Origin: Lenisia limosa
Taxonomy: Eukaryota; Protista; Breviatea
Length of the DNA: 53,423 nucleotides
Assembly (NCBI GenBank): GCA_001655205.1
Contig: LPNZ01010302.1
Span: 1-53,423, forward strand
Direction: 5' to 3'
In this document: piece after piece, positions 1,835 through 52,836 of the stretch
How the letters are laid out: each line of letters starts with the position of its first letter
Numbering within the stretch: position 1 is the stretch's first letter
Program-made: the position numbers and the translations under genes
Notes under the pieces: generated by a model
Database searches by the model: none
The model's input: the letters and a program-made list of their open reading frames with translations, nothing else
What the model was told of the DNA's origin: nothing

Positions 1835-1891
1835 ATGGTGCCGGCATTATTGCTAATAAGCTTAATATGCACGTTGTTGGGTGCTGGAGCC
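1835..1891 (+). other. Predicted signal peptide MVPALLLISLICTLLGAGA
   Basis: Hydrophobic core followed by an A-x-A cleavage motif. Confidence 0.8.
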
Positions 1892-4800
1892 GTTTTTGTT
1901 GAGCCACTTCAAGGTTGAGACTCATAATTGTGCTGTTAACCCAATGTAGAGGAGTTTCTCGACTTTAAGCAGTTTCAATCATTCAAAAAGGGGCTTTCAT
2001 TCTCCTTTGACGGCAGTTCAAACTCTTTTCAACATAGCGGAAGAGCCTTGAAGGTAGGTCCTGGTGTTTGCTGTTCCTGTTCACTCACTGTGGTGTCTGA
2101 AAAAGGCCTTTTTTGTTCACTTTATCCGTTGTCCATAATGATGAGCAAGGCCATATGAGGTGGTCATCTTATAGCCATCCAATATTGATCACACCATATG
2201 ACACCATATTTTATCGCGTTTTCTATTTTCCTGTGGTCTCTGTTTTTTAAGTTTTCCAGGTTGCTTACACCTCTGTCTATCTTGAGAATGCTGTTGTCAC
2301 TTTATCGGTTAGGGGGAGGGGTCTCAAAAACTCAATGCTCAGTTTGTTTGCCTCGGTCTTCACCCCGTAGAGTCACATCTTCGAAACCATCACCGACTCT
2401 CATCTCCATTTCAAAAACGTCACTTTCACAAGTGCTGAAAATGGTGAGCCTAACTCAATCAAAAAGCCATTCCATATCCTTTGCATTCTGCTTTTTATAA
2501 GTCTGAGATAAAACCACTCTGAGGGAACTCAGTTCGTTGTGCAGTTAACTTGTTCAGCCGAGGTCTTCAATACGACCCTCCCCTCCGGCCTTCTGGCCCA
2601 AACTGTGTCTAATTCGGTTGGCCAATCGGTTTAATTTTCACCTCGTCGCATCCCAATTAAACTTTATACAATTTATATGTTATATCCAAACTTTATACAA
2701 TTTATATGTTATATCCTAACTTTATACAAGAAAAATGATCTTCATATCACAACAAAAACTGCCTTCAGGGTTAGAGGTTTTTTGTGTTGGTGAAGTTGGC
2801 ATAAGTTTTATTCTCCAGACCATCACCTTTGAGTCATGCCGAGTTGTCTTGGCGTCAGGAGTGGGAGAAGCAAATGTTGCAATGGTTAGTTGGGATTTGA
2901 TTATGACGAGATGTGGAGGGAATGTCAAGCTTATTTTTCTCACCTGTTGTAGTTCCAACATTTCCAAGGAGATTTAATCATTATCTCTTCCATTTTCTCG
3001 CTCTACTCCAATGAAACTTTTTCGGTAAGGGAGGGATGCTATTTCAACTTGAAGGGATTTCCCATCTTTGGCCGTTCGGGTGTCAATACTTGCATAACAC
3101 AACAGGGCTCTAATGATGGAATTGCGTCATCGTTCCGAGAGGGTTCTTCCGTAACTATCGAGAAATCTTTTATGAGGGTAGGCGCTGTGTTGTTTGCGGT
3201 ATCAGCTGCCTATCATAGTGAAACATTATTCATGTAGTATTGTATCCATGCTTATCAGAGCATCTTTCGACTCAACCCATTTAGATGAACGCGCGCGGCG
3301 GATCACGGGCTTATTTAATCGGCCGCAGTCTGAGTGCCACCACAGTTTCTGTCACTTCCGCCTCCCTCCCCCTTTATGGGGCTGATGCCATTCGTCTCGG
3401 TGCTGGGGGGGGGGGGATGACTCTGTTTCAAAGAGGCTAATACCTCGATAAATACCGAATAACTGACATATCTTTGTTGACCATAGATCTAATTGCTAAC
3501 AAAATCTGAACGAAAAGCTGTCTTTTCTTGCACGTGCTAAATATTCATTTCGTTTCAATTTCCCGCGCATTTCCATTGCTTCTCACCCAATAGGTCTCAT
3601 GGGTACTCTTTCGAGTTCGTCTCTTTCAATATCCAGCACATCTTTCAAGGTCAGCTTGGTCGCGCTGTTGGTTTTGGAGATGCATATTTGAAATTCAAAT
3701 ATATATGTCAAGACAGACAGCAATGTTAGATTAGCAAACCGTGGAAAGACTCGAACGTGTGGCTGGTGCAGGAATTACATTGAATGTATCAGTGTATCAT
3801 GTTATTCAGCATTATAATGTAATGCCCACTGACTCTTCAGCACTTTGCCGAGGGACCTATAGGCGGTTTAGTCGAAACGCTCAGTCGCTCTTCAGTCTCT
3901 GTCAAGTCATCAACTGTATTGGGGTTCTGATGTGACTGTGTCTGCTTTGCCTTAAAAAAAGCGCAATTTCTCCAATTCTGTGTACAAATTTCTGCGACCT
4001 CCCTCCCCAGCTATCTACACAAGAGAACTTACCTCCCTCCCCAGTTAACCGGTATTATTTACCTCCCTCCCCAGTTAACCGGTGTTACGAACGCACACGA
4101 GTCCCTTTATCTCATTTCGTCGTCTGTGGAATCGTCAATCGTTTCTCTCAAGGATTCCGCTTTTTCAGTGACAGCGTATGACAGTATTCTGGTGAGCAGG
4201 TGCAAAAAGGATATAATACATGTATATGTTTCTTTTGACATGTTTCCCTTTCGCTTTGTTGACCGATAGGAACGATCTTCTGGCCTGGTTCTGGACCTTG
4301 ATAGCAAGTCCTCCCTGAGTGTTCTGGATTCCACCGTTGAAGTAGGGGGCTACAGATGGTTCACGCATCCGGGTTATTATCTATCTCGTCAACACCTGAC
4401 ATTATCTATCTCGGCAACACCTGACATTATCAGGTCAACGCCCTGCTTAACAGCACCGAAATTGGTGTCATAGCCAACAATGTTGCGGGTTCTGTCAGGT
4501 ATGTGGGCTTGACCCATCGTATCACATTCCAACCCCACTTTACTCAAACTAGTTTGACGAATGTGGATATCAGCGGTCTGATACAACCCGAACTCTCTTG
4601 CGCCAGCGCTATTTTCGCGTCCCTCAACCTCACGCACAACATTGCCATTAACGAGGTTTCCATTGCTGCCGTCTTCGACAGGGAGTCTTCTGATGCCGTT
4701 GTGGCTGGAATCGCATGGTTTGTGGTCTCTTTTATTTTGGTGTATCTCAACAGCTGTGAGGCAAATGATTAATGATTATATTCTATGAAGGGTATTGATA

Positions 4801-7800
4801 AATTATCCTTGTGAAAGTGCTGGGTTTGATAGATTATCCTTGTGAAAGTGCTGGGTTTGATCGATTTTCCTTGTGGAAGTGCTGGGATTTTTTTCACCGC
4901 CCCAGCTCTGCAGTGGAGACCAACGCCAACGCCACCATATCTGGTCAAAACGTAAGCCTAATGTTGTGAAATTCAGATGCCGTCCCAGTTTCCTAGTAAC
5001 TTGTTGATTAATTGGAGCAACTGACGCTCCAGGTCTTTTTGAAGTCCAACAAGGACCTGAAGGGGACTCAGGAGAATTCCTCTGTTCTCATTGTTGAGGG
5101 GCTTGAATTGTGGGTTCCGGGCTAAACTCTCGATATTTAGTTTTTGATTAGAGTGAAGCTCTTTTGGTGAATTTCTTGCTAACCAATATCTTTGAACCTC
5201 AGAGCTACCCTTTAATCTAACCCTTGTAGGTATGCTGGGGAGGCACGCAGAAAGCTGTGTGCACAGAGTTGTAAGGCAAATNNNNNNNNNNNNNNNNNNN
5301 NNNNNNNNNNNNNNNNNNNNNNNNNNNNNNNNNNNNNNNNNNNNNNNNNNNNNNNNNNNNNNNNNNNNNNNNNNTTTTCCTCATGGGGATAATTGTAGAT
5401 TTTTCATTACTTTAGGATCACCAATCTCGACATTGAAATGTCAGTCCTGACGCACTCGGCTATCAATCCCGACGCCAAGTCCCAAGCTACCGTTTTGGTA
5501 GGAGCTTGTGGCTTGATATTGTTCTTCTTTTTGACTTTTACCGGACCAAATGGAGCACCTAATCTTGTAGTTCTCAGACGAGATAACTCAGAAATTCCTT
5601 GATAAAACTGCACCATTCGACTTCGACGCTGAGGTTTGCGGCATTTTGAGTGAAAAAGGCTTTTACGGATCTCTCAATTCCTCACCCTTAAGTCGTGGTT
5701 TGCCTCCTACGATGCTGTGCGCGCCTTTTCTCCAGGTCAGCATTGAGATGTTGCTATTTCCTTCCTCATCAATTCTGACCCTCCTAGGCGCAACTGTTTA
5801 CGCCTCAACCTGTTCTGAGTTGGTGTCAATGGCTCCGAACACCATTGTTGAACTTTCTTCCAACATCGATTGCTGGGGCTATTCTCTCGACTCAACCATC
5901 CTGGTATGTTTTATGGACAGCTGTAGCCAGATCTTCCGTCGCCTTTTACCCCCAGGGAGACTACGCTATTACTGGTATCCTCGGAAACGGGTTTACTGTC
6001 GACGGACTCACTCTCAACGTTTGCAGGTCGTGTCGTCTTTTGCTCTCATTTATTGAATCAGAATTATCTCTGTTCTTTTTGTTTGAAAGATGGTATTGTT
6101 TCCACACCATTTTTTACGCATTTCATATCTCAGGGACCCCTTGTCTCCTTTGTCGGAAGATCTAGCATTGTGCTCGTGCGTTCTGTTACTTTCACCAACC
6201 TCCAAGGTGTGGTTGGTTCGGAGTATATTGTATCTCTTGATGTCTCCTTCTTAATCGTTTCAGTTGAAAGCACTGATATGCCAGCTCTTTTTGTTGGAGA
6301 AGTTTCAGGCGGATCTGTAAGGGGGGGGGGGNNNNNNNNNNNNNNNNNNNNNNNNNNNNNNNNNNNNNNNNNNNNNNNNNNNNNNNNNNNNNNNNNNCAT
6401 GATTTGCAGTTTGTGGACCTGACTTCAGTCACTGTCACGAACCCGATATCTCTGACCACATCTTCGGAAGTGTTCGGAACCTTTGTCGGTTCCGTCGGTA
6501 CCTCATCGGCTGTCATGGCCATCAACGTCAATGCCGATATTGTCGTCACTCAGGCTGCTGGGGTAGGCTGCAATTGAAGTTTACTTTCATGCAAAATAAT
6601 GTTTGCAAGTTTTTTGTTAAAGAGTAGATGACTCAGAGATAATCTGGAGACAAACGGTTCCTCTTTCTGATTCTGTGTGCAGTGAAACAGTCTTTTCTTC
6701 TCACCCATCTCAGTCTTTCAACTCGACTGGTGGTGTCGTTGCCGCTGCCTCAAATTCTCTCGTTATGTGCGTCTCATCCAACATTAAGGTGACAGGGATC
6801 TTATCAACCGTGGCCCTTAATGATATCCCACTTACCGATTCAGTTTGAAACGCTCTCAGCCTCGACCTACAGTGGCGGTGTTGTCGGCCTAGCTGAGTCT
6901 TCAGCTCTCAGGGTGCGCTGGGGAATGTCTCAAATAACACATACTATATGACAAGCAAACACTCGCACGAGACGTAACCTAGCTTGCAACTGACATTGAA
7001 GACTGTCTTTGTGGACGTGGAGTTGACAGTTCCGAATGCAAAGGTTGTTGGAGGACTCGCCGCGTCCCAGGCCACAGCCGTGAGGGGGTGAAACTGTTTA
7101 ATCAATGTCAATATCATAATGATACAATTTTGGGATATTATCTAACATAAAGAGCTGCCTCACAGTCCCAGACTGACGCCTTCATCTCCCCTCCTGCCGA
7201 CATTGCCTCGGCCTATATTTCAGCCTACTACTGCAACGTCATCGTCGTTGCTGATGGCACTAGCCTTGAGGTTGGGTTATCTGCAGTTACAATGGATGAG
7301 TATTTTCGAGAAATATATGTATTACTACATTGATAAATGTAGCGAACCTGACTGTTGCTCACACCTTTAGGCATTCGGCGGATTGACGTCATTCTCAGCT
7401 GGACAAGTGCTGGTTGAGGCTGTGACTATCACTGCGACTATTAACGTGGGGAAGGGTTGCGCTTGGCTTTCCATTTGCATTTTTATCGGATTCCACCACT
7501 TTTAATTGTTAAACTTTTTCTAATACATCGCAATATTTAGTGCCCACTTTTCTATCCATTCACAATGGGTTGCACAATGACCCCCTCAGACGTCCGAAAC
7601 CACCACACACGTTGCCGGTGTAGTAGGCCGCTTGCAAGGCGACAGTGAAGTGTCCGTTGTGTCCTCTGAAGTCAGTCTCACCGTTTCAAGCGGAGCAGTG
7701 GTGGGTGTCCAACTGCGGACCGGGGTTTTTGTGTGCATTAAATATTGTTTTCCTAGGCATTAACATCTCACTCCCCTTCCAGGCCCCTTCACCTTCCATT

Positions 7801-10800
7801 TTTGGAGGTTTGATTGGTGATGCTCTGTCCTCAGAGTCGCAATTCTCGTTAAAGAAGAACCTTATCACTCTCAATGGAGAAATCGTGAGGGGTCATTCTC
7901 ACTGTTTTGTGATATTTCTGTTCTTGAGTAAGGCAGTGTAACGCTTTAGGCATTGGAAAAGTTTGGTGCTGTATTTGGACAGGTGACATTGTCTACATCC
8001 TCCAGTCTCTACAGAACATCCATCTTCGGAACTGTGACGGTGAGCTACTATACCAAGGAACATGACGTAACAGTCCTTTTTGTCGGTGAATACTGACCAC
8101 TCCAGCACACTGCCAGCAGCGGATCCGCAGCAATCTTCTCGCCAACTGTCCTTCTTCACAAGGGGCCCACACGCTATACCATTTATTTTGGATGGAAGCT
8201 ACCTCTTAGCGACGACTCCGTCATGAGTCATGTAGTGTCACAGGTCAGGGCTTTTGGTTCCTTGTTCGTCACGCAATACTTCGTTGTCTGCAAGCTTCTT
8301 GCCAGCATTGATTAAAAATACATAATATTATGTGTATAGAATTGATTTAAACATATTCACGTTCTCAGCTCTCCATCACCTCTTCGGGACCCGTTTCAGT
8401 CTTCGCCGACTCTATTGAGGTGAGTCATGCCATCTCTATTGAGGTAGTCATTAAACAACATAATGCAGAGAATGACAGCATAATTATCTTAATACTCTTC
8501 ACCCCACCCAGCCCCATGCCACTAGCCCCTCTTCGGAGCTGTCAGTCAACTATATGAGTCTCAAGGCCCTAACCGGCCTTGGCACCCCCACGTTTATTAA
8601 CTCAACCTCTATCGCCGTGTCCATTAAACGCGTCTTTGTGTCCGGAGATATGGCATCCTACAACGGAGTCAGTGTTGTATGCTGGGCTATTGACTTGGCA
8701 CAACACACCGTAACCTCTGTAATTACTTGCCTCTATATAATAAGGCTAGTAATTGAGATTACCATAAATGACGTGTAAGCCACATAACTGATTGTAACCT
8801 TTAGGACGCCCGGTCGCCTTTAGAACTGTTCACTTCCGATGCGGCAGTCTTCGCCGATTCTGAATTCGGGGTTTGGTTTAACCAAGGTTGGGGGGGGGGG
8901 GAAGTTCATGTTGTGAACAGCCTTTGAGGCGATCTAACGATCCAGCTGGGCGGGTTGTCCCGATGCTCACTGGACTCGGCTTTTTGACTGTAACGAAATG
9001 TGAGGACTTCGCCACCCCCGCTGCCTACTACGAACTTGCAGTATGCAGGGCGGTGGTGGTTTGATATCTTTGTAGCAGTGGTGTGGACGGACTCTTCCCA
9101 CAAAACCCCGACTACTTCCTATTTCTTGGCGATGTTTTTTATGATACCTTCTCCACATGACCCTTTAGGCTGACATCGACTGTTCAGGCTACATGGGAGA
9201 GTTTGCCAAGGTTTGAGGAGTAACCCACGGATTATTGCTATGAAAATTATAGCTGACGTAAGTTTGATACATTCGTTCTTGAATTTGATTGTTTTCAGGC
9301 ATACGGCTTTTTCTCAATCAATGGAAATGGACATGAGATTTCCAATGTGCTCTTGACTCCAGGAAAGGTTAGGTCTACTCTTTTTTGGAGCCCTTTGCAC
9401 CCTTTGCACCCTTTGCATCCCCCCCATTCTTACTGACTTAGCACTTCATCGATTCCGGTTCCTACAGCGGATCCTTCAAGGAAATGACGTTCTCCAACCT
9501 CACAATCCAATGTGAAAAGGCGTCCGATTGTGGAATGTTCTCCGTTATCGATGGCGATGTGAGTTGAGGGCTGATTTTGATTCATTGAATGATATTCGGA
9601 CAGTTGCAAGGGTCTACTTTGGGGACAGAAGAAACGCTCTCTGACAGGGTATTTTGGCGTCATTTCTTCCAGCGCAACGAGGGGACCTACATCAGGATCA
9701 GTGACCTGACCATTCCAAACGCCCAAGTCATCGGGCTTGACGAAGATGCAAATTGTAGGGAGGGTGGGTGCAGATGATTTCGTTCGTGGCATTTTCCACC
9801 ATTACCTTGTAGTGATGCTTTTCTCCAACGAAGTTACTGCCAACGAGATTTCAGTTAAGAACTCCCTGATAACTGTGGACTACCAGGCGATCCAGGTCAG
9901 CGTTGCCTTGTAAACTCATAATTGACGTTACCCATGATGAACGGTGGATTATTTGGCTCAGATGCCATCATTGATATGTGCAAATAGCCTTTTAACCATT
10001 TAGACTGGAGAAAGCTCTTGTGCTTTTTTCTAACCCATTTAGACTGGAGAAAGCTCTTGTGCTTGTTTCGGCTTCAGTATGGTCGAAATTGTGGACATTG
10101 ACAAAACCATTTTTGACGTAAGCAAGGCTATTCTTGTGATGGCATAGTACAATTTTGGGTGCTATACCTATTGCTGATCTTACATCATGCTAACACCTCA
10201 GTCAACCTTCTCTGGCTGCTACAGTATGGCCTCGACTTTCAACCAAATCAATGCTAATGACTTGGTTGTGTCCAACTCTAGTTTCACTGTAGGCAAGACC
10301 GACAACTTTATCAATTTTGTTCAATCTTGTGATGTTCCCCCCCCCCCCCGCTTACCGTGNNNNNNNNNNNNNNNNNNNNNNNNNNNNNNNNNNNNNNNNN
10401 NNNNNNNNNNNNNNNNNNNNNNNNNNNNNNNNNNNNNNNNNNNNNNNNNNNCCATCGGCGGAGTCGCCAAGAAAATTACCAGGACCAAATGTGCGGAGGG
10501 GGGTTCTTTGTATTTGTGACTTGGGTTTCTCTCCTGGCCCTTTGACTTTGCTTCAATTGTGAGGGAATTTGTTCACGAATCATTGATAGTGTTTCTGTCA
10601 GCCAAGTACCCCATTGCCTTACATTGCAGATGTGACCTTCGAGAGCGTTACGGTTGAAGTGGAAGCCAGTGGTGACATTCTCCAGTTTGGTGAGGGGGTC
10701 TATGGTAGCTCCTCTGCTAAACAAAAACCATTATCTCGATAAACTCCACGTTTGCATTTCTTACTTAGCGCAGGGTCCCTTGCCGATACGGCCGATGTCT

Positions 10801-34800: not shown

Positions 34801-37800
34801 GCCGACTATCTGTGTCAGTATGCGTTGGGAGCCTTTTTTGTCTTTTGCACTCTCATGTGCTACGAAACCGGCAAATAATCTCCTCTCTCCTCATGTAAAG
34901 TTTTCCGTTATATTTGAATGGTACTCACGCATATACATCCAAGATTAACGTATCTGATATATTCGACAGTATTTCGTCAGATAACCTCTTTAATCAACAG
35001 ATCCCTGCGCCGCTCCCAACATGACCCTTGTTACTTTCGATTGTCCGGAATATGCCCTAGCTGTCGGAGATGTCTGTAATGCCACGTGCCCTGACGAGAT
35101 GTACCCTTCAGTTGTATGATTGCTGACTACAAACAGAAATCTTCCGTTTATTGTGCAAACCTAACCGCCACAGGAGCAATCCACATGTTCTGAAGAGTCT
35201 GTGTGGACCGCAGTTGTCTGTGACTACCACTACTGTTCGGCCAGCCTCCCCGCCAATACTGTGATCTCTGATCCGACGTCGCTGATTGTCAACAGAAACC
35301 AGTCCTTCACTTGCGAGCCGACTTACGACTCTGAACTCACTCAGGTTGGCAACATTGTCTCATTCAACTTGATACAGTATTTCATTGTGGCTTGGTAGCA
35401 TTACTCATTCGGATCTCCATTTACTTACACTTATTGTCTTGTTTTCTGTTAACATCCAGATTACCTGTGATGACCTCGGCAACTGGCCTGACGAAGTGTG
35501 TATCAAGACCTGTGCGCCTCCCACTGACGCCATTATGACCTTCAACTGCTCGGATAAGATCTACAAGGGCGACACATGCATCACGGCCTGTCCCTACAGC
35601 CACTACACTAACACAACCGAGGTGACCTGTCTTGATGACGGCACATGGTCTGTTTCCGAGTGTATTGCCAAGCCCTTCTGTAACGGCACCGAAACCGAAG
35701 AAATGACCTTCGCTTCCAACACCACGATCGTGTTTGACTACGACACCGTGACTTGCAAGCCTGGCTACAAGGCTCGGTCCCATTCCGAGCTCAGCCTCAT
35801 GTGTTCTTCTGACACAACCTGGCCGGAAACTCCGTGCAGACGTGGGTTGCTGCCTTCTCTTCTTTGTATTTGTCTATGCCTTGAGACTATTTAACTTTTC
35901 CAGCTTATTGTGAGACTCCGACTCAGACTGACACGTTCTTCCAATGCCCCTCACTTCCGCACCTTGAGAACGACAGATGCAATGTCACCTGTGGTGCCAA
36001 TCAGTACCCCGACTCGGTAGCTGGGATGTTGCCCTAAACATTGCTTCTTTTCTTCAGGCATATGATAAACGCTACTCCCAGTGTTACTCTTTATCATCCC
36101 CCCCCCCCCCNNNNNNNNNNNNNNNNNNNNNNNNNNNNNNNNNNNNNNNNNNNNNNNNNNNNNNNNNNNNNNNNNNNNNNNNNNNNNNNNNNNNNNNNNN
36201 NNNNNNNNNNNNNNNNNNNNNNNNNNNNNNNCTATCAACGTCACCGTTTCTGTTGACTTCACCTGTAGCGGCCAAAACGAGCCCAATGTCGACCAAGTTG
36301 GCTGTGGTTCCATTGGTAAATAGCTTTTACACTCGTTTTCATATTGTGTTGCTTCTCTTATGGATATTATATTTAATTTACCTAATTAGGTTGCCTGTAA
36401 TCTTGCTGGGGTTTGGGATACTCAGCCTTGCCAACCCGTCTGTCTCCCTCCAGCTGTCAGCAACATGACGTTTGTATGCCCTGAAGGAAACCTCTTTGAA
36501 GGCTCCATCTGTGTCTCCTCATGTCCCTACACGCATTACGCCAAGTTTGCCAACGTGACCTGCTTGGGTACCATGCTCTGGTCTGTGAATGAGTGTGTTG
36601 CAAAAGAAGTCTGTACAACTGAGCAGATCGATTCAACAACCTACGACGACGCGCCTGTTCTGGCCGGTGACGCTACCAATGTAACGTGCCGCACCGGCTT
36701 CGACTCATTCGAGGAAGATGGCCAAGTCGTGTGCTTGGTCAACGGAGAGTTCGACCTTTCTCCTTGCAAGTGTGAGTGGGGTACTTGGTCAATAATTTTA
36801 TCCTCTCTTCTTCTGAAGTTGGAATTTGGACTTTTCTACTCTGAGAAAAGGGCTTAACATTACTGCTCTGTTTTATGATTATTTTCTTCCATCACCACAC
36901 AGCTATCTGCGCTGCACCCGTATCTGAAGCCGACTTCCAATGTAACTCCACGGCCTCCCACTTTGACCACACCGTCTGTGTTCCGTCTTGCCATGCCGGC
37001 CATTATCCATCTGAGGTTTGCTTTGAGTCACTTGATATGAACCTCAGTGATCTTTAAATATTTTGAGAATCTTGCTCGATTTGAACTCCATTTTGATTTC
37101 TATGCAATAATTAATCTCCACGCGGTCGGTATTGTTGTGAAAGGCTTCTGTTGGGCTTCGTTTGACTCTTCCTTTTTAGGTTGAAATCCGCTGTGCCACT
37201 CACCTCTGGTCAGCTGACGTTACCTGTATAGGTTGGTCTTGGTAATGGTTAATTTTATTCAACCCTAATATCCTGTTCATATGATTAACGCACTCAGAGA
37301 TTGAGTCAGTGCCAAGAAACGTAACCTACAGTCTCGATACCCTGAGTGTTTCCTGGGAGGCTTCAACCCAAACTTCTCTCTACCACGTAAGCTCCAGTTT
37401 CCTGCTCTAGGCAGATTATCAACTATTTTTTCTTCCCCCTTCTATCCTTGAGACGAATAGGATGAAAACTATTGTTATTTCTCGAAAGAATGTTGCCCCG
37501 AATCATCTCAACAGGTCCTCATTGCTGCCACTGAGTCCTCCTTGGTCCTCTACAACAACACCATCTCTGACACCTTTGTCAGCATCACGATGGTCCATCG
37601 GTTTGCGAGACAAAGTGCCTATTCTTTCCCACTCACGAATAAACTCTTTCAATATTGTCCTCACCATCTTACCCACTTTTTAGTGCAACTTTGGTCATCA
37701 CCGTCACCCCTATTGTGGTGTTCAGAGGCGAAGACGTTTACGCCACCAACATGCCCAACACGACAGTGTACAGCCCTGCTCTGCACCCTGTTGTGGACAT

Positions 37801-40800
37801 CCTGGTTGGCAATGGAGTGGTCATTGGTAATATTGGAGTTTTGTATTTATTTTTTCTTCTTGATTTTTCCTCCTTGTGGATACTTTCTTCACCTTAACAC
37901 CCTCAGGCCAGCAACACGACTCATGAGTCATTTGACTTGTCATGGGCTCTCCCGGACGCCTACTACACCGTTGATGAACTGGACTTTGTCGTGTCAGTGG
38001 TCGTTGATGGGGTTGAAAGAGAAGACGTTGATGTTGAAGAACTGTCCATCCACGTTTCTGGCCTGACAGGCCTTTCTAACGTCACTGTGTTCGTCTCTTC
38101 TTGCTTCCTCACTTTGTGTACCGAGAAGCAAAACATCACCTGGACCACCTTACCCACACTTCCCTTTAAACCTGAAAACGTTACTGCACAAGCTACGAGT
38201 ACTCTGATTTCCCTGACCTGGGATTATGACGTCATTTATGCCACAGGTGAACGTTTGTTGTCTTTACCAAAACACCAGCCCACCAATGGAGCCCTATTGT
38301 CTATTTATATCGCATAACAAGTTAAAAACCAGTTAGGGAATGTGGAGGGAGGTGCTCTAAAAGTGAATGTAGAAGTATAAATCAAAACAGGGTGACTTGG
38401 ATAGTCCGTGAATTGATTTTTTTTTTTTTCTTTCGAAATAAGGGTAAACCTTATTTCTTATTGTTTTGTTTCTACGCAACCTTTGTCTGTTTTGTTATTT
38501 CTGAAATAAAACTGTTGTTAAACACACTTCTGCATTTAAAACTTTTTTTGTTCCCATTCGAGATTTCACCTTGATTTTACTCACCCTTCTTAGGACCGTG
38601 TCACTTCGAGTACTACACAACTCTCGATTCCAGCTGGGTACAAGTCCTCTCAGCTTCGGTCAACATTTCCCCTGGTGACCTTTCACAAATGAAATTCGCT
38701 GTGCGTACCACGTGTCAAGCGGGATCCTCTGATGACGTGTCCGTGACGGTAGTGGTCCCCCCGCCTCCTCCCAGCGCTCCTGTTGTCATATCGGTCGTGG
38801 TAAGCCCGGGTGACAAGACTGTTAATTGCAGCGATAGAGATAGTATCATTGAGCGTCACCCTTTCTTTTCAGGCATCTGGAGAGCCCGAGGACCCCGTTG
38901 CCTACTCGGTCGGGGACAAGGTCGTCTTCACTTTTAACAAGAACACCAACATGCCCACTCATAACACAGCTGGTGGGTACCTCAAGTTCATACTTCAATC
39001 AGATAAACGCCGGAAACACTCTTTTTGCGTTATTTTCTCCTCACCCCTGCGGCAGATGTCATCGGAGAGTTCTCCTCGGATTGGACAGTTGAATGGAACG
39101 ATGCGAAGACTTTGGTCTTTATAGTAAACTCTACCATTGACCCGACACCTGTTATTGGAACCAAGACTTTCACCATTTCTTCGGCTGCTGGCATCAAGGT
39201 AATGGATAAAATCCCGTTCTGAACCAACTTGAGGGTCTTTCTCATTTCGCAGGATGAGACTGAGGAATCTGAGGTGACTTCTGGAGTGACACCAACGCTG
39301 ACCGGCAGCTGGGGAACTCTTGCAGAGGCACCTATCACTGTCTCCCTTGCTGTCAACGTCACTACTGTAAGCAGAGAATTCATGCTATTAAGTTTGTGAT
39401 TGTGATGAAGTTTGAATTTTACTATTTCGCAATACCCATGCTCCAGATTGCTTTGACTGAAGATCAATCTCGCAATGGCCTTCCTCTCACAATCGAAACC
39501 AACACCCCGGGTTTGCTGGGTTTATACTTCAAGATGATATTTCTGCGGGGTTTTTTTTTTAACCTGTTTCAGATGCCGAGATCCAAATTGAGCTAAACAG
39601 CGACCACTCCACTATCATAACTCCAACGGCAAGAAGAAGTGACATTATCACTGCCGGTGATGCTACCGAGTGGTTTGGAAGAGTAGGCGTGGGTACTTGA
39701 CACTTTCTTCTCAGCAATACGCTGCTTCATTGATGGATTCTAATGTTGTAAGGTTGAAGTTATCCCCGACTTGGACTACTCAGGACCCGACACCTTGTCT
39801 TGTCGCATTACCGACGTGCTCAACGATGTGGTGAGGGGAAGGGATGCCCAACGATGTTGTGAGGGGAAGGGATGCCCAACGATGTTGTGAGGGGAAGGGA
39901 TAAATAAAACAACATCATGGACATCTTTGATTTTGTTTTATTAAGGTTAAATATTGAGTGATTTGTTCTTTTTTTGCGCTACCTTGTTTTATGAAATAGC
40001 ATCAGCCTTAATACAAGACACTCCTTTCACCTATTCAGGTGGTCTTCGAGAGCTCCTTCCCCATTTACGTTGAGAGAATCATTGATCCGGTTATCTTCTC
40101 TGCTACCACTTTGAGCGTTGTCCCGACTGGTGGTTCCGTCTTTAATGTTTTCTCCCTTAGCAGCCCCGATGCGGTTAACTCTGATGTGGTAAGATCTGAA
40201 TCTTTGATTTGTTGGATAAAGGACGAAGGGGTTAAAAAAAATAACGTTTCTCATATTACTCACTCATATATTCCACTTGGAAATAGTTCTGTGGAGGGGG
40301 AACTGATATTTCAGCTTGAGCCAGATACTTCCTTTTCAGTGTATAAATCGATAGAATATGATCATAAAAAAAACAACCTGCTCTTATAATATTCCTAGAT
40401 TACCCTGGAACTGAAATCGACTGATGGTGAACTGAGTGTTAACTCTTCTCTCGTTGCAGTCTCTGAAGTATGCTTGAGGGGGGGGGGGTCATAAATATCG
40501 ATATTTTATGGTTTTTGTTTTTGAACACAATTTAATTATTGCTCTCTAGATTTCTCGAGGATTCTCTCTCTATGGAACCTTGGCAAATATCAAACTTGCG
40601 GCGATCTCCACCAAATGTATGAAAATAGTGACGAATTACTCTGTGCTGGAGTTTACTTGTTTTTCCTCACATTCTAGTTGTGCCTTCTGAGGACAGTATC
40701 ATCTCCGGTACTGCAACCATCTCCGGGCTGACTATCTTCAGTGAAGTCACTGCGACAACTATAGTGAGGAGGCATATCGGGGATTTGCTTTCTATTGTGT

Positions 40801-43800
40801 TCTCTTTAGTCCAGGGAGAAAGACCAAGGTTGTAGCTTACACCCCCACTCCCACAGGTATCAGTCAACATTACCTGCCCTGGAACAACCCCTGACTTAAC
40901 CTCGGCAACTCTGATGGGTTCTGCTCTTCTTGTACTGGAGTTCTCCGGGCCTGTTTACCTTCCAACCGCCCCGACCGTAGCAGACGTCTTGAAGGACTCT
41001 TCCGTTATAGGTGTAGCTCCGGTATGTTACCAATCGTCGTATCTGACAAGCTGTTTCTCTTCACACGATGATTATGATTATATACCCAGCAATTGTTATT
41101 GATTGTTGGCCAGGTTAACATATAATACTCCATTTACTCCTCCAGACTACTGCCCTCACGACCACCACCGCCACTACTATTACGATGGCCCTCAGCAGCT
41201 CAGCCACCATTCGTGTTGGGGACAGCGTTGAGACCAAGGCAGACTCATTGGCTGTGTGCCTTGGTGCCTCGCCTTCTCTTCCCACACTCGTAAGCGACAG
41301 ACAGTTCAGCACATAATACCCATATCTGTTGTTTTTTTTCTTGGCATTCTTTAGTTTTCTAACCCGACAGACTGCGTCACTGACATCTACTTCCACTTCC
41401 ACTGTTTCCATTGAAGGATCGTCCACTGTGCCAAGATGCTCGAACTCCAGCTTGACGTTCTCGGCCTTAGCTACCAACCTTGGTGCAGTGTCCCCTCTGA
41501 ACGTTGTTTGGGCCGTTGACAATGTCGACCAAAGCAGCCTGGTCATTGATGGACTAACTATGACAATCAGCGCGGCCGCTGTGCCATCAGAAAGTTTCAA
41601 CGTTTCCGTTGTGGTGGATACCATTTACGGTTCCTCCGCCGAGGCCGCTTTTGAAGTTACTCTTGAGGTTGGTGCCTTTTTTATTATTATATGAAGTTCC
41701 ACCTATTCACCTGTTCTCACATTTTAGGAAATTGCATTCTCAGTGGGAGTACAGTCCGCTCTCTCCACTTCGCAAAAGTCCTTCGAGGCTTCCATGCTTA
41801 TCACCGATGCCTGTAATGATACTACTATCTCGACCTATGAGTGGGCTTCTTCTCCAGCTGTTGATCAGAGTTGCAATTTGGCGTCATGTGTTTTCGATTT
41901 CTCCGCTCTCTCGGCGGGAACGGTTGTGACTATTTCTGTAAAGGCTATTAGCGATCTTGGTACGGCTACAAGTTCACAATCAATTACCTACACACCTCTT
42001 CCTCCCGTCATGTCATTCACAACTTCTCGTGTTTTCTTGGTTACTGCCAAGACAGCCCTTACTACCGCTGTCTCTTCTGGCGTTTCAGGCAATAACTTGA
42101 CTATTGTTTACACTTGCACAGCCTTTGATAACTCGGACTGTGGTTTCCCTATCGGTTCTACTGGTGTGGACTTCTCTTCTGCCTTCCCTGGGGTGTACAC
42201 TGTCTTTGCCTCTTCTACAGACCCTATTACTGGACTTTCTTCTCAAGTTCAGCAATTTGTGGAGGTGACCAGAGCCTCCTTCGCGGTTGACGTCACCACC
42301 ATGCTTCAAGGAACCCAGCTTACTAACACTAACACTGGGCGTCTTATTGCCTCCATCATCGGTACCCCCAGTTTGCCTCTGACCTACAAGTGGACTCTTG
42401 AAGACTCTTCCTTGACTTCTTCTTCCTCTATCTTGGTTTTGCCTTTTGACTTCACCGTCGGCACTCACAGCGCAACACTCTCTGTTACTGACAACTTCGG
42501 ATCAGTCGCATCCAGTTCAGTTCAGTTCATTTCCGCCCAGCCTCCCCTCGTGACTTATCTGTCCGTTAGTCAGTCTGAGGACACTGTCATGGTTACTGCT
42601 CAGGGTGGGACGAGCTTTATTGCTGAAGATCCAGCCCTGTTCTACGCTGTGTACCTTGACGACACAATTGTCACCCCCTTCCAACCCAACCCGGTGCTCT
42701 ACTTCACTCTTGACTCATTTATGACCGGACAGCTCTCTGTCATGGTCAGAGACTCCCTCGGCGGTCAAACATCGACTGACTTCTCTGCCACTGTACCCGA
42801 GACCACTGTGGCTCTCAAGTCGGCCCTCACGTCCTTCAAACAAACAGGCAACACCCTCAGTTTGGTCAACTCCGTAAGTGGTGTCCTCTCGGCCCAGAAC
42901 ATCACTGATGCTGATGTCTCCACTGCCGTTGTCATTCTGAAGAAACTCAGCAGCCAAGCACCACGGCCTGCTTTGAGTATGGCTGCTGCTAAGGTATCGG
43001 ATTACGACATCGAGGAAAGCAGACTTATCTTACAACAAGCTCAAATCGAGATATCTGGTCTTTCAGAAAAGGAAACTGAGAAGGCCATTGAGGCCACCCT
43101 TGTTACTTACAGCTCCCTTTCGCAAACGTTCTCTTCACCCTTCCCTCTGAGTAACCTCCCTGGAGGCTTCAACAACGAGACCAGTGATCTTTGTGACGTC
43201 ATGGACTCAGTCAGGCTCCTTGCTATCAAAATGATCAACACCTTGACGTTCACCAGCGGCGATCTGCACTCTGAGCTTTCCGACCACTTCACCGTGGTAA
43301 CTAGCCGAATGACACGCAATGGAGTCGTCGATATTCAAGGCTCCCAATTTGTTGCCCATTCAGCCGAATCTGTGGTCATAATCGCAGTTGACAGTTCTCT
43401 CTATCCCACTTCGCTCGGTATCTACCTTCCGGAATTCGTGTTCGAGATCATTTCCGATGCTAAGACCACATTCCTTTCTGAGTCTTCCAAGCGTGAAGCC
43501 GCCCCTTGCCCCACCTGCGAAATGGCCTGTCTTTCAGTTGTTGATGGCGAGTGGACGGTCAGTGAAGCCGATTTATCCGGCTCCAGGCCCGCATGTGTGG
43601 TCCCCAAGAGTGGCGTTGTCGCCTACGGATGGGCGGAATGTGGCAACGCAACACTCGAGTGCCATTGCGGAAACGGTGTGGTTGACGCCTCTGAAGACTG
43701 CGATAACGATTCCGAAGACTGTGTCAACTGTATGGCAACTCCCGGCCATGCCTGTCTCGACAACGAGTGCTCCAGCGTTCCCTCCAAGAAATGCTTCGAA

Positions 43801-45819
43801 ACTGAGTCACGCTGCTCATCATGCCACGGCTCTCAGACCTCCATCTGCGCTGTCTGCTCTGCACCTTATGTCGCCGTCAACGGTGAATGCGTCATTTCAG
43901 GTTAGTGGAGGATTTATTTCTGTGTGTGTGTTTTTTCTGATCTAATATTCGCAGTTGATACACGGAACATTACTGCTGTATCCAAGGCAACTTCTGTGGC
44001 TTTTGGTGACGTTGAAGTAACCGCTAATGCTTCCGAGGCTAACCTGGGGTCTGATGCTACCTTCCTTTCAATTTCCGCTCCCTCTAGGTTTGGAGACATG
44101 TTCATACATCCTGCTGTGTTCCATTTGACCGTTTTTTTTTGTTGTTGTTTTTGCTGTTGTTGTCTACTTATCTTTACCGTACTGCATATCGTACTTCTCT
44201 ATGTCCTCATGGTTTTACGATTTCAGACCAGACCAGACCGCAGACCCCGAGTCTCTTGAGTCTTTCCATGGCATCTGGTTCGACGTCGAGGTTCTTGACG
44301 AAAATGGGCTAGCTGATACTGAGTCAACTGGGCCCTTCACTGTCTCCATTCCCGCTTCTTCGGTCAAGGTATGCAAGGGCAAGTCTTGTGGTGCTTTGTG
44401 TTTCGCTCTACTGACCGCCTAGTCTGGCTACACCCCCCAGCTTCTGATTTCCACCGACTCGGAGTGGTCCGCTAACTGCGCGTCTGACCCCAAGGAAGTC
44501 GATGACATGGTAGGTTCCCGCAAGAGCTGTTCTGTACCAAAAATATTTTCTTATTTGTTTCCTGTTGTACTCTACGTTTTACCTCACAACTTCAGATTGT
44601 CTTCACGGTGTGTGACCAAGGGACTTTCGCTGTGGTCCAAGATCGCATTGTCGCACCTATTGTTGACTCCACTGTCGACTCTTCCGCACCCATCATTTCT
44701 GAAGAAGATGATGATGACGGCTTCAATTGGCTCTGGATTATTCTGCTCATCGTGCTAGTCATCCTTATCCTTGTGGTGGCCTTTATCATCCTTGGGAAGA
44801 AAAAGAATGACGAAAAGGTATGCTGGGCTTGACCTTTTGGAATACACGTGATACCCTCCCACAATGTGAAAAAAACCAATATCGTATTTCTTTATCCTGT
44901 ATTATGTCATCTTCTCCAGGAGCAACCTCCGCAACTGAAACCAGTTGGTAGCGAGCTTCAAACTGTCGACAATGTGGGGAGGAGATTGGTCTCTTTCAAT
45001 ATCATTTCGATACTGTCTTGCTTGCAAAACGTCATTGGAACATAGCCCATTTTACTACTTTCTCAAAGTGGTGAACTGAATATTTATTGTATTAACCTTG
45101 TAGACCTCAACCATTGACAATGAGACGACTCACGGTACCATTGAAACAGTTGCCATTGATGATGTCGATGACGTCACTCCCACTTCCGAGGTTGCCACTC
45201 CCACTTCCGAGGTTGTCACTCCCACTTCCGAGGTTGCCCTTCCCACAACAGATGTTGCCCCTGCCACTACAGAGGCGGAGGCTTCTGCTGAATCTGTTGA
45301 GGTATTTATATGGGTAAACACTAGGGCAAATGTACTTTCAATACTTATTTGATATCCCCTTCCTCTAATTACTTATAGGCTAAATCCACTCCGCCTTCTC
45401 CCGAATCTGAAGGCCCCAGAGCTGATGGTGAGGGGTGCATGGGGGATTACGATTATTGCTCTTGTTCACTTTTCCTCAGGGGTGAGATGGAACCAGAGCC
45501 GTTGTGCTTTTATTTCTTTTCCATTTGCATCTCTTCATGAGCTGTTTTTATACCCTTAATTATCGATAATTCTTGTCTTCCGAACTGAAGCTTTCTTCAG
45601 CAGCAACAGAGCTCACCATCACAGAAGCGGCCAAGAAGACAGTACCCGCTGACAAGGTCGACACCCCCTCTTTAGAGGCCTCACTGGACCTAGTTGATGA
45701 CAACAGCGTATGTCGGGTGGCGGCGATTTGATTTTGATCCGCTTGTTTATTGGTTTGTGAAAATGGGTTTGTTGCATTGTCTCCTTTTTTCACAACAGCA
45801 GATCGAAGTAGTGGTGTAA
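1835..45819 (+). CDS. Giant multi-exon type-I membrane/adhesion protein: GLUG-like beta-helix modules + sushi/CCP arrays + FN3 + REJ/PKD-like + Cys-rich + TM + tail
   Basis: ATG 1835 gives MVPALLLISLICTLLGAGA-VF (signal peptide). Phase-consistent GT-AG exon chains were traced over 1835-4500, 15.7-21.2 kb and 37-45.8 kb, with no new signal peptide or unavoidable stop found. It has a 2173-nt exon (41728-43900), a single TM at 44728-44793, and a last exon (Q)IEVVV with TAA 45817-45819. Continuity cannot be verified across nine N-gaps or at 12.1-13.2 kb. Confidence 0.8.
3344..3664 (-). CDS. Candidate nested antisense gene (three core exons) inside the 1817-nt intron 2617-4433
   Basis: Exons 3664-3587, 3536-3456 and 3402-~3344 are joined by 50- and 53-nt GT-AG introns, phase-consistent and stop-free: ATKLTLKDVLDIERDELERVPMRPIG|TCKKRQLFVQILLAIRSMVNKDMSVIR|TETNGISP. 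A poly-C tract precedes one acceptor. Confidence 0.45.
12181..12996 (+). CDS. Candidate nested gene or alternative 3'-terminal exons within the ~1-kb intron of the giant gene
   Basis: Exons 12181-12266, 12366-12421, 12514-12602 and 12666-~12810 are joined in phase by 99-, 92- and 63-nt GT-AG introns. The product is K/E-rich (..DEAATFDEFLPGLLERTKNEHKAEEAKAKADEAAINKRAEQEKSS..). A possible last exon ends at TGA 12994-12996. Confidence 0.5.
14027..14101. repeat. Intronic tandem repeat, ~28-nt unit (cacatgtctcattgctgctcatcaatgc) x~3
   Basis: Directly visible degenerate copies. Confidence 0.8.
15021..15132. repeat. Intronic minisatellite, 11-nt unit taagccttgac, derived from the donor gtaagccttgg
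   Basis: Five perfect copies plus one partial at 15069-15132, and three degenerate copies from 15022. Confidence 0.9.
16730..18481 (+). other. First sushi/CCP cluster (about 4-5 domains)
   Basis: For example CNGLPPPAPENATWVCSEYPPITSSSCFLQCPEGQGPSRAAMMC, VRCSDFDGSWPEIEC, GCLEDYTWPDLTC. Confidence 0.75.
17881..17988. repeat. Intronic tandem repeat, 36-nt unit x3 (branch-like motif plus polypyrimidine)
   Basis: ctgatcaaaatggttctaattaactttctctcttca and two variants, just upstream of the acceptor at 17998. Confidence 0.9.
21250..28900 (+). other. Second block of GLUG-like beta-helix modules (two modules)
   Basis: ADLDC (21348)..GNNHTITGL (21483) and ADLDC (24984)..GNGHTVSDM (25172). Rungs include NFGGVTAG, LLGGLT, FAGLF, LAGGLVA, KIGGLFG, IAGFIA. 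Confidence 0.65.
31753..31842. repeat. Intronic 42-nt direct duplication
   Basis: ttttggcaaagt(g/t)aacatcttgagagcgcaagatgtggggga x2. Confidence 0.9.
33524..33567. repeat. Dispersed 44-bp intronic repeat, copy 2
   Basis: 41/44 identical to 294-337; lies 10 nt before an assembly gap. Confidence 0.85.
34559..34700. repeat. Intronic minisatellite, 25-nt unit ctctcttcttccaatacttttcatg x5.7
   Basis: Near-perfect tandem copies with no spacers. Confidence 0.95.
37300..38760 (+). other. Fibronectin type III domains (about 3)
   Basis: VPRNVTYSLDTLSVSW; ASNTTHESFDLSWALP..IHVSGLTGLSNVTVFV; PFKPENVTAQATSTLISLTWDY. Confidence 0.75.
38870..43520 (+). other. Ig/cadherin-like linker and REJ/PKD-like region
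   Basis: VEVIPDLDYSGPDTL; PDLTSATL..VLEFSGPV; SSSATIRVGDSV; VSIEGSSTVPRC; TYEWASSP; LTIVYTC; LTYKWTL; HSATLSVTDNFGSVASSSV; PPLVTYLSV; LSVMVRDSLGG. Ser/Thr-rich Ig-like strands with Y-x-W motifs typical of REJ-type modules. Confidence 0.65.
43666..43900 (+). other. Myxococcus-type Cys-rich repeat (DUF4215-like) plus furin-like Cys segment
   Basis: CGNGVVDASEDCDNDSEDCVNC..GHAC, then CSSCHGSQTSICAVCSAPYVAVNGEC. Confidence 0.7.
44728..44793 (+). other. Single transmembrane helix
   Basis: WLWIILLIVLVILILVVAFIIL, preceded by an acidic stretch (EEDDDD) and followed by GKKK. Confidence 0.9.
45173..45277 (+). repeat. Coding 21-nt tandem repeat in the cytoplasmic tail
   Basis: VTPTSEV-ATPTSEV-VTPTSEV-ALPTTDV-APATTEA. 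Confidence 0.9.
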
Positions 45820-46861: not shown

Positions 46862-46932
46862 TGAATGTGTCTCATTCTCTATTATGGCATGAAATAAAAA
46901 TATAATTTAAGGAGTCTAGTTTCTTGTGTTCT

Positions 46933-50589: not shown

Positions 50590-50858
50590 TCAATGTAACA
50601 TGAACTTTCCAAACGCTGGTGACCTGATTTCCTTTCGTTTCACTGACTGCTGGAGAGAATAGAAGACAAGGGACCGTCTGACATGGAGGAAACGGGTATC
50701 TTCACGGACTTTACGAAGGATCGACTCCTTAATAATCAACACAAAACAAATAATCACTAAATGATATTATGAAATCTCAGGAAACAAAAAAAAAATCCCA
50801 TCCATACAAGAGGGATAGCAGCATGTCTTGGTATAGTCCTTGCTAAGCTCTCCATTGC

Positions 50859-52700: not shown

Positions 52701-52836
52701 TGGTCAACAACAGTTGGGGGGGGGGGNNNNNNNNNNAAACTTTAATACATCAATAATGTGGATGGAGTATACAACCGAAAGAAAGGAAAACAACAGAAAA
52801 ACAAACTGCTGAAAGCGAGGACATTTGATCGATTAT

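Follow-up and report, generated by a model that had tools for sequence, protein, structure and literature searches.

In the sea-urchin sperm receptor for egg jelly (suREJ1), polycystin-1 and PKDREJ, the REJ region lies in a large glycosylated ectodomain with a GPS-type motif near the membrane, and in suREJ1 it is followed by a single transmembrane helix and a short tail. The GPS/GAIN autoproteolysis motif is Cys-framed and ends C-x-H-L-(T/S)-x-F-A-V shortly before the first transmembrane helix. Fibrocystin/PKHD1 is of giant size and resembles a type I receptor; it combines Ig-like arrays with a parallel beta-helix region, a single transmembrane helix and a short tail, and lacks sushi modules, a REJ region and a Cys-rich repeat.

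Here we examined a window of 53,423 nucleotides from the breviate Lenisia limosa, in which a single hand-traced reading frame had been proposed to encode a giant chimeric surface receptor or adhesin. We consider it reasonably probable that the window holds one plus-strand gene, running from an ATG at 1835 to a stop at 45819 through about 200 exons, whose product would be a glycoprotein with type I membrane topology, 7,100 residues or more in length, and a lineage-specific REJ receptor. If this is one gene, few predicted protist surface proteins would rival its product in size. As in suREJ1, polycystin-1 and PKDREJ, a REJ region in a large ectodomain is followed by a GPS-like motif near the membrane, and as in suREJ1 there is one transmembrane helix with a short tail. 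The gene differs from these receptors in having no 11-TM or channel-like part and no PLAT, C-type lectin or LRR head, in a REJ region too divergent for a direct Pfam match, in a DUF4215 Cys-rich repeat placed between REJ and membrane, and in a DQG sequence where the HL-S/T triad would stand. Its likeness to fibrocystin is one of overall layout only (giant type I protein, Ig-like arrays, a putative beta-helix region, one transmembrane helix, short tail), with none seen in sequence.

Gene model, assembly gaps and alternative readings

The features of the gene, all on the plus strand, are as follows.

1835..2053, plus strand: start codon and signal peptide (MVPALLLISLICTLLGAGA...), from a manual chain in frame with the exon at 2260
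2260..5633, plus strand: N0, S/T/V-rich repeat region, model residues 62-486 (blastp against M1, 6e-4; against M5, 7e-5)
5693..8886, plus strand: module M1, 484 aa (cap C-x20-DIDC, GNGFT, six GG[LV]xG motifs)
8946..12088, plus strand: module M2, about 470 aa, not counting any residues lost in the gap at 10360-10451 (module alignment)
12163..12970, plus strand: doubtful K/E-rich linker exons between M2 and M3, in frame in the model with modest scores
13196..16607, plus strand: module M3, 506 aa (module alignment, motif count)
16691..21197, plus strand: sushi/CCP-like block A, about 7-8 units and some unassigned inserts, with the gap 20648-20730 inside (Cys/Trp pattern, phase-1 introns)
21267..24859, plus strand: module M4, 518 aa (cap ...DLDCS..., FGNNHTITGL)
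24915..28060, plus strand: module M5, 506 aa (cap ...DLDCS..., YGNGHTV)
29002..37231, plus strand: sushi/CCP block B, about 23 units alternating between six-Cys and four-Cys forms (Pfam, AF2/Foldseek, Cys/Trp pattern, intron phase)
37298..41667, plus strand: FN3-like and Ig/PKD-like beta-sandwich region (sequence patterns)
41728..43900, plus strand: single exon of 2,173 nt, 725 aa (paralogue alignment)
41791-42876, plus strand: REJ-equivalent beta-rich part of that exon, where the REJ stretches of the paralogues map
about 42799-43236, plus strand: helical part of the same exon, followed by a beta part
about 43615-43893, plus strand: Cys-rich DUF4215-like repeat of the same exon
43955..44727, plus strand: juxtamembrane beta-rich region, then an acidic stretch (GPS-like motif comparison)
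44728..44793, plus strand: single transmembrane helix WLWIILLIVLVILILVVAFIIL, then GKKK (hydrophobicity of the model)
44794..45819, plus strand: cytoplasmic tail, about 145 aa, acidic and T/S/P-rich, with TPTSEV repeats

An independent exon-chaining model produced a frame-consistent chain from the ATG at 1835 to a stop at 45817-45819, thus arriving at both ends of the hand-traced frame. About 200 exons (median 86 nt) are chained without a stop through some 21 kb of coding sequence, giving 7,093 residues in the model. The joined protein was analysed by itself for hydrophobic segments, internal repeats and motif counts. The 196 GT-AG introns have a median of 91 nt and a maximum of 536 nt, and canonical GT-AG introns can be read directly in the sequence. 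The GC content is 51% in exons versus 40% in introns, and codon usage correlates with that of paralogue ORFs of the same genome at r = 0.7-0.87. The procedure is self-training, and the chain is frame-consistent by construction; a reverse-strand control under the same procedure scored 578 versus 1437 (40% of the plus-strand score) and split into three chains, so part of the chain score comes from the method. Several properties are not imposed by it: a lone signal peptide at the N-terminus and a lone transmembrane helix near the C-terminus, sushi Cys/Trp patterns preserved over exon junctions, phase 1 in all 15 introns between sushi units (49 of 196 gene-wide), and five modules of about 500 aa that are mutually colinear.

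Exon 1 (1835-1913) is separated by a 36-nt intron from exon 2 (1950-2053), and between 1.5 and 46 kb the ATG at 1835 is the sole good signal-peptide-like start that fits the gene structure. A start at 838 given by the exon finder was dropped in its favour. Tiny GT-TG introns were permitted in a re-run of the model and none was chosen. The predicted last exon has 18 nt and ends ...IEVVV before the stop; an alternative read-through stop lies at 45729-45731.

Nine assembly gaps fall within 1835-45819, three of which (31992-32074, 33578-33623 and 36111-36231) were missing from the program-made list, and the left flank of most is a homopolymer of 9-13 C or G bases. Three of them (10360-10451, 29982-30077 and 36111-36231) interrupt coding sequence, the last two cutting units of sushi block B. 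The same type of module is found on both sides of each, but length and frame across these three gaps cannot be verified. Gaps 5282-5374, 14872-14949 and 20648-20730 adjoin low-score exons of 27, 14 and 7 nt, respectively, that the model needs for frame; since these are tiny fix-up exons, exon sequence may be missing there. The remaining gaps, 6332-6397 and, within block B, 31992-32074 and 33578-33623, are intronic, with both splice sites visible and phase-compatible flanking exons.

A single gene is favoured because the signal peptide and the transmembrane helix at 44.7 kb are the only two hydrophobic segments in the 7,093-aa model and there is no other credible signal-peptide start. The ends, intron phase and colinearity of the modules also speak for the single giant gene of the original prediction, which stands as the best reading; against it are the three coding gaps and an odd linker at 12.1-13.2 kb, whose composition is unlike the remainder of the gene. 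It is possible, although we think it unlikely, that two or more adjacent genes on the same strand were merged by the tracing, with a break for example at this K/E-rich linker or at a coding gap, across which the frame is not readable. The exon finder does over-merge, since it also fused the unrelated downstream AASDH-like gene when allowed to (a fusion that we dropped, as the tail frame stops at 45819, or at 45731 by read-through). However, all parts are of extracellular type and would depend on a single shared signal peptide and anchor; no second signal peptide or transmembrane helix occurs anywhere. Moreover, the same module types carry on past each gap, and the internal non-coding intervals are all at most 536 nt, versus 1.3 kb to the next gene.

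The number of gaps, nine in 44 kb and most with the homopolymer flank, together with the many paralogous REJ and sushi genes in the genome, raises a slight chance that the scaffold is a chimera, in which several paralogous giant genes contributed pieces that were put together at runs of N and the architecture is partly an artefact. However, no paralogue of the module exons is detectable anywhere else in the 49-Mb assembly, sushi units and modules cut by a gap pick up again in register beyond it, and the 725-aa exon is also present on a 41-kb contig of another public assembly. That the gene is decaying or silent, its open frame being a relic, seems to us highly improbable: the protein libraries match the 725-aa exon only as a genomic ORF call and the GPS-like triad is degenerate, but the long chain of exons has no stop and about 30 sushi units keep their Cys and Trp frameworks. 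A single transcript would be expected if the one-gene reading is right. Genes of this sort will be missed by standard gene callers and by exon-wise family scans.

The membrane-proximal cassette and its paralogues

The C-terminal cassette, consisting of REJ, the helical/beta region, the Cys-rich repeat, the GPS-like motif, an acidic stretch and the transmembrane helix, is found again in no fewer than eight further genes of the genome (contigs C8721, C3687, C7126, C10474, C5678, C2313, C8677 and C9984), although identity to this gene is only 19-28%. Because so many genes share the cassette, we place the gene in a family of single-pass REJ receptors specific to the lineage, in which it has a head of its own. 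Judged by its sequence it is an unusual member, and the lineage appears to build very different ectodomains on one common base of REJ, Cys-rich repeat, GPS-like motif and single transmembrane helix. Exon structure differs as well, with about 200 exons here versus exons of 1,000-2,000 aa in the paralogues.

The REJ region claimed in the original prediction can be recognized by homology to these paralogues but not by a direct family match. The 725-aa exon matches the C7126 ORF at 3e-28 over residues 11-724. A profile built from this pair finds C8721 at 2e-22, and with C8721 added it covers C3687 end to end. These paralogues pass Pfam REJ (PF02010) at 46, 83 and 110 bits (C7126, C8721 and C3687, respectively), while the 725-aa exon and its parts gave no match at E up to 1, and a six-frame search of the genome for REJ found 12 places, none on this contig. 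The myxobacterial-type Cys-rich repeat fared similarly. Positions 43525-43902 have no direct Pfam or NCBIfam match to the DUF4215 or myxo-type repeat (PF13948, TIGR02232), but the C-terminal 45-85 residues of the 725-aa exon match six units of the C10474 ORF, which passes DUF4215 at 2e-11, and the CGNGVVDASEDCD motif (repeat pattern CGNG..D..E.CD...) can be read directly. Ahead of the exon, FN3 domains are suggested by sequence patterns and by the clear fn3 that precedes REJ in C8721; the direct Pfam match (PF00041, positions 37907-38251) is weak and partial, at E = 0.089 and 13.5 bits, with the domains split by introns.

Structure prediction for the 725-aa exon was poor (AF2, pLDDT 59), and Foldseek with this low-confidence model found nothing beyond generic arrays of Ig-like domains in tandem, at TM-scores below 0.2. 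HMMER against 1.84 billion representatives gave 33 matches, comprising the query itself, three paralogues that are 100% identical to ORFs of the same genome, and bacterial PKD-repeat proteins; outside Lenisia limosa the exon thus resembles only generic bacterial PKD repeats. A word search of protein libraries returned only its own genomic ORF call. The suggestion that this domain combination is unknown from described proteins was not refuted, as assessed through the largest exon alone.

About 40 aa before the transmembrane helix, paralogues C8721, C3687 and C8677 carry VCHLSTFAV. The corresponding motif here, VCDQGTFAVV (44608-44637), is degenerate and split between two exons. Self-cleavage is unlikely in this gene because the His-Leu-Ser/Thr triad is replaced by Asp-Gln-Gly, and a family with both intact HL-S members and one degenerate member provides a natural contrast on whether cleavage matters. 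Neither this gene nor the paralogues match Pfam GPS (PF01825), and a PDB search with a profile of the paralogue juxtamembrane region found no chain. No multi-pass part, of either 11-TM or 7-TM type, follows the motif; the one membrane helix that had been predicted is the sole internal hydrophobic segment of the model. The tail had also been described as signalling-like. This description was not supported: its roughly 145 acidic, T/S/P-rich residues match no family, and any signalling by the receptor would be conjectural.

Repeat modules, sushi stalk and a possible role

The modules M1-M5 are homologous and colinear (M1 versus M5, 1.5e-10; M1 versus M4, 7e-9), and within the assembly they are found in this gene alone. 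The module start takes the form C..(20)..D[IL]DC ... GN[GN][HF]T[IV].GL, after which GG[LV]xG turns recur. The five modules contain 19 motifs of this type against about 2 expected, with 1 in the other 3,309 aa, and N0 has none; N0 is probably a solenoid, distantly similar to the modules. The original prediction had called the modules GLUG-like. Their cap form and turns are like those of bacterial GLUG-motif (PF07581) beta-helix surface proteins, a likeness of motifs alone. A 1,959-aa protein from a Clostridia MAG has VNVFGNNHTI[ST]GL in common with the cap, as well as 14 GGLVG turns. Against the assignment, the 28-position Pfam GLUG profile matched none of ten module exons (E up to 1), and when the entire assembly was searched in six frames with E up to 10 it had no match on this contig. 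The test is a weak one, since the exons average 35 aa and the bacterial GGLVG-repeat protein, which itself belongs to no Pfam family, also escapes Pfam. A rung profile of the bacterial protein reached at most 9.7 bits on the window, which is not significant, and tblastn gave E = 0.059. Pfam on the exons placed the modules in no curated family, a module exon had no usable match in the ESM Atlas, and tblastn of a cap exon found no match among plasmids. The modules may adopt a solenoid fold.

The sushi arrays, six-Cys units included, proved real. An AF2 model of 35460-35840 reached pLDDT 87, and the best 50 listed Foldseek matches of this model in the PDB were all CCP-bearing proteins; together with the Cys/Trp framework, this model-based evidence confirms the sushi fold of the arrays. 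The Pfam Sushi profile (PF00084) scored 21.5 bits for 35373-35891, just above its cut-off of 20.7, and 20.5 bits, just below it, for the exact exon, and a word search of protein libraries with the 127-aa sushi exon found nothing. Selectins, factor H and CSMD/SVEP1 resemble this gene in having tandem CCP folds with every module flanked by phase-1 introns, and selectins also have six-Cys variants. The present gene differs from these animal proteins in belonging to a protist, in its roughly 30 units arranged in two blocks, in their combination with REJ and large repeat modules, and in a similarity that is borderline for Pfam. Sushi modules in tandem whose flanking introns are all in phase 1, an exon-shuffling signature, occur outside animals.

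From these parts, the order from the N-terminus would be a signal peptide, an S/T/V-rich head, three modules of about 500 aa, about 8 sushi units, two further modules and about 23 sushi units, continuing with FN3/Ig-like domains, REJ, the helical-plus-beta region, the DUF4215-type repeat, the degenerate GPS-like motif, one transmembrane helix and a disordered acidic tail. A long stalk could be formed by the sushi and Ig-like arrays, keeping the repeat modules at a great distance from the membrane; there the modules might bind a surface, prey or epibiotic bacteria. The REJ/GPS-like base may be the connection to the membrane, one sensitive to force or proteolysis. The protein may serve in adhesion, prey capture or mechanosensing, as originally proposed. 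Epibionts have been reported for breviates. A bolder reading, to which we give little likelihood, is that a REJ receptor recruited five bacterial-type GLUG-like beta-helix adhesin modules onto an animal-like exon-shuffled sushi stalk, making a 200-nm-class tether that captures or holds bacteria. If so, the gene would encode an adhesin on the host side of a partnership between protist and bacteria, and phase-1 sushi exon shuffling would predate animals or have arisen outside them.

The stalk also varies in position within the family: sushi units of the same double type, with 28-41% identity to those of this gene, are present in C9984, where they stand after REJ rather than ahead of it.

Gene model and its control

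Contig LPNZ01010302.1 is one of 11,727 in the 49-Mb assembly, and the DNA of the window is eukaryotic, since long prokaryote-style open reading frames are nearly absent and the stretch at 35.1-38.4 kb, when read directly, consists of exons separated by introns that are about 60-160 nt long and have canonical GT...AG ends. The contig does not look human. From its sequence, the best reading is that a single gene would encode a giant surface glycoprotein of type I, a member of a lineage-specific family of REJ single-pass receptors. The gene was modelled with an exon-chaining program, self-trained on the window, that uses codon log-odds, splice-site matrices, phase bookkeeping and optional jumps at N gaps. 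On the plus strand the program converged on one chain, which, once separated from a neighbouring gene, reached the same 3' end (45819) as the original prediction. The start proposed by the program was poor and was replaced by a hand-picked ATG at 1835, the start first proposed. This ATG opens a signal peptide, and the frame continues through exons 1 and 2 into the exon at 2260.

Features of the giant gene model
1835, plus: ATG opening the N-terminal signal peptide MVPALLLISLICTLLGAGA, textbook type, read by hand
1835-1913, plus: exon 1, followed by a 36-nt intron
1950-2053, plus: exon 2, in frame with the exon at 2260
2.26-5.6 kb, plus: N0, S/T/V-rich repeat region
5.7-8.9 kb, plus: module M1
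8.9-12.1 kb, plus: module M2
12163-12970, plus: doubtful K/E-rich linker, five exons, coiled-coil-like stretch ERTKNEHKAEEAKAKADEAAINKRAEQEK
13.2-16.6 kb, plus: module M3
16.7-21.2 kb, plus: sushi block A, about 7-8 units
21.27-24.86 kb, plus: module M4
24.9-28.06 kb, plus: module M5
between M5 and sushi block B, plus: spacer
29.0-37.2 kb, plus: sushi block B, about 23 units, six-Cys and four-Cys types in alternation
37.3-41.7 kb, plus: FN3/Ig-like region
41728-43900, plus: big exon, 2,173 nt
between the big exon and the TM helix, plus: juxtamembrane region
44728-44793, plus: TM helix by hydrophobicity, then GKKK
after the TM helix to 45819, plus: acidic, low-complexity tail, about 145 aa

About 200 exons (median length 86 nt, 51% GC) make up the model and encode 7,093 residues with 80 N-x-S/T sequons; its 196 introns have a median length of 91 nt, reach at most 536 nt and are 40% GC. 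All modelled introns are GT-AG; when tiny (<35 nt) or TG-ending introns were allowed between 1835 and 45819, none was picked. Codon usage agrees with that of paralogues in the same genome. The exons at 12163-12970 can be read in frame between M2 and M3 but are unlike the rest of the protein; they could represent a linker, a set of alternative exons or a gene nested in this one.

Several genes may have been merged by the tracing, the scaffold may be a chimera, or the gene may be a silent relic; there is evidence against each of these. The chain lacks stops by construction, and the reverse strand, given the same self-training, also scored 578 (versus 1437) in three chains, so the score alone proves little. 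The weight of the single-gene model rests instead on four regularities that were not built into the program. Strongly hydrophobic segments number only two in the 7,093 residues, the signal peptide and the helix at 44728-44793, in agreement with the single TM originally predicted, and no other credible signal-peptide ATG lies in a usable position in 1.5-46 kb. About 30 sushi-like units retain their Cys/Trp framework, most of them built from two or three exons. The introns between sushi units are in phase 1 in 15 of 15 cases, versus 49 of 196 for all introns. Finally, M1-M5 each consist of 15-18 exons and roughly 500 aa and are mutually colinear in alignment (M1-M5, 1.5e-10 over 389 aa; M1-M4, 7e-9; M1-M3, 5e-5; M4-M5, 1e-4).

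The model contains local errors, for example at 31.73-31.87 kb, where the sushi pattern indicates a better donor and acceptor than those chosen. At 31730-31875 a short stretch is duplicated in tandem (GKVNILRAQD appears twice in the translation). The model reads through it where the sushi pattern points to an intron, for which a GTGAGG donor following ...DISCL and an acceptor before VQCQTIPSS make better junctions. The program also fused the giant gene with its downstream neighbour, which we judged wrong. This neighbour (about 46900-50600, plus strand) has an AASDH/ACSF4-type look, with an adenylation remnant, the carrier-protein motif LGGKSLQAM and a beta-propeller-like part.

Nine N gaps lie inside 1835-45819, and the supplied gap list lacks 31992-32074, 33578-33623 and 36111-36231. 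To the left of most N gaps stand 9-13 consecutive C or G, a pattern suggestive of a systematic artefact of assembly or scaffolding, and bases adjacent to gaps are not to be trusted.

Assembly gaps
411-500, 6332-6397, 10360-10451, 20648-20730, 29982-30077, 31992-32074, 36111-36231, 52727-52736: C/G-run pattern in most of these
10360-10451: inside coding sequence, M2 present on either side; length and frame unverifiable
29982-30077: inside coding sequence, sushi unit begins left and finishes right; length and frame unverifiable
36111-36231: inside coding sequence, splits an exon of the expected type; length and frame unverifiable
5282-5374, 14872-14949, 20648-20730: adjoin 27-, 14- and 7-nt exons that score near zero
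6332-6397, 31992-32074, 33578-33623: in introns, both splice sites visible, flanking exons phase-compatible

Real exon sequence is probably missing at 5282-5374, 14872-14949 and 20648-20730, because the model needs the 27-, 14- and 7-nt exons there to keep the frame.

Domains of the proposed stalk and the membrane region

Family searches were run exon by exon, and such searches test domains split by introns only weakly. The Pfam Sushi scores of 21.5 and 20.5 bits lie on either side of the cut-off (20.7) and are borderline. An AlphaFold2 model of the exon at 35460-35840, built from an alignment with the neighbouring exon and paralogous units of contig C9984, reached a pLDDT of 87, and its best 50 listed PDB matches are all CCP-bearing, including PAPP-A, CD55, beta2-glycoprotein I, factor H and C1r/C1s, confirming the predicted sushi arrays. 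For FN3 there was only a partial, non-significant Pfam match.

Pfam REJ has no match in the window, and support for the predicted REJ region is indirect, through homology to REJ-bearing paralogues in the same genome. Residues 11-724 of the big exon (725 aa) match an ORF of contig C7126 at 3e-28, and this ORF carries Pfam REJ at 46 bits. A profile of these two sequences finds contig C8721 at 2e-22, and a three-sequence profile spans contig C3687 end to end; in a six-frame genome search the latter two score 83 and 110 bits for REJ. The REJ stretches of the paralogues correspond to 41791-42876, the beta-rich part of the big-exon structure model, which is itself poor (pLDDT 59) and gives only generic tandem Ig-like arrays in Foldseek. 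Similarly, the predicted myxobacterial-type Cys-rich repeat has no direct Pfam or NCBIfam match, but the motif CGNGVVDASEDCD is readable in the big exon, and the end of this exon aligns with six repeat units in an ORF of C10474 that is recognised by DUF4215. The tail had been called signalling-like; it has no family match, and this description is not upheld.

The sequence VCHLSTFAV represents the core GPS self-cleavage motif. The paralogues on contigs C8721, C3687 and C8677 have ...C-x(15)-VCHLSTFAV followed by an acidic stretch and a TM helix. Their juxtamembrane domains (L013 7933-8619, L010 2246-2860 and L018 449-1123, respectively) have a mean column identity of 61% and end in THVCHLSTFAV, and are candidate self-cleaving GPS domains. 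Since neither Pfam GPS nor a PDB profile search recognises the region, even in the paralogues, the GPS reading stays at the level of the motif. At the equivalent place (44608-44637) the giant gene has VCDQGTFAV, in which the His-Leu-Ser triad is replaced.

Repeat modules and GLUG-type proteins

M1-M5 all begin with C-x(about 20)-D[IL]DC, followed in three of the five by GN[GN][HF]T[IV]. Motifs of the GG[LV]xG type number 19 in the modules, where shuffling predicts about 2, and a single one lies in the other 3,309 residues. Pfam GLUG has no match on exons or in six frames, and no paralogues of the module exons were found elsewhere in the assembly. A cap-exon pattern scan of 185,579 prokaryotic genomes gave one confirmed locus, chosen by the pattern itself: a 1,959-aa protein of an uncultured Clostridia MAG (L019; CANREZ010000002.1, 59652-65786) with VNVFGNNHTISGL and 14 GGLVG turns. 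By eye it is a textbook GLUG-style repeat protein. At E up to 0.01 it matches no Pfam family, so proteins of this kind escape the Pfam GLUG model, and the absence of a GLUG match in the window carries little weight. Scores between this protein and the window are non-significant (tblastn, E = 0.059; profile of its turns, at most 9.7 bits). For the GLUG-like modules first proposed, the likeness to bacterial beta-helices of the GLUG type offers a reasonable lead and not a demonstrated relationship, and a claim of horizontal transfer is not warranted. With a long sushi/Ig stalk the protein would display its repeat modules at a great distance from the membrane, and its role is probably adhesive or recognition-related.

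Relatives in the same genome

Searches of protein libraries with the big exon and a sushi exon found no full-length or transcript-derived protein of the giant gene. Against 1.84 billion representative proteins the big exon gave 33 matches, namely the exon itself, three proteins from an ENA assembly with 100% identity to ORFs in this genome, and bacterial PKD-repeat proteins covering one Ig-like domain. The C-terminal cassette is present on at least eight contigs of the genome. The paralogue on C9984 has in common with the giant gene a double-sushi unit and the Cys-rich part, but differs in its head and carries its sushi stalk after REJ. The 2.17 kb of the big exon are intron-free, whereas the other 19 kb of coding sequence lie in about 200 exons averaging about 100 nt, a striking difference in intron density for a single gene; the REJ/Cys-rich cassette is also intron-free in the paralogues, in exons of 1,000-2,000 aa.
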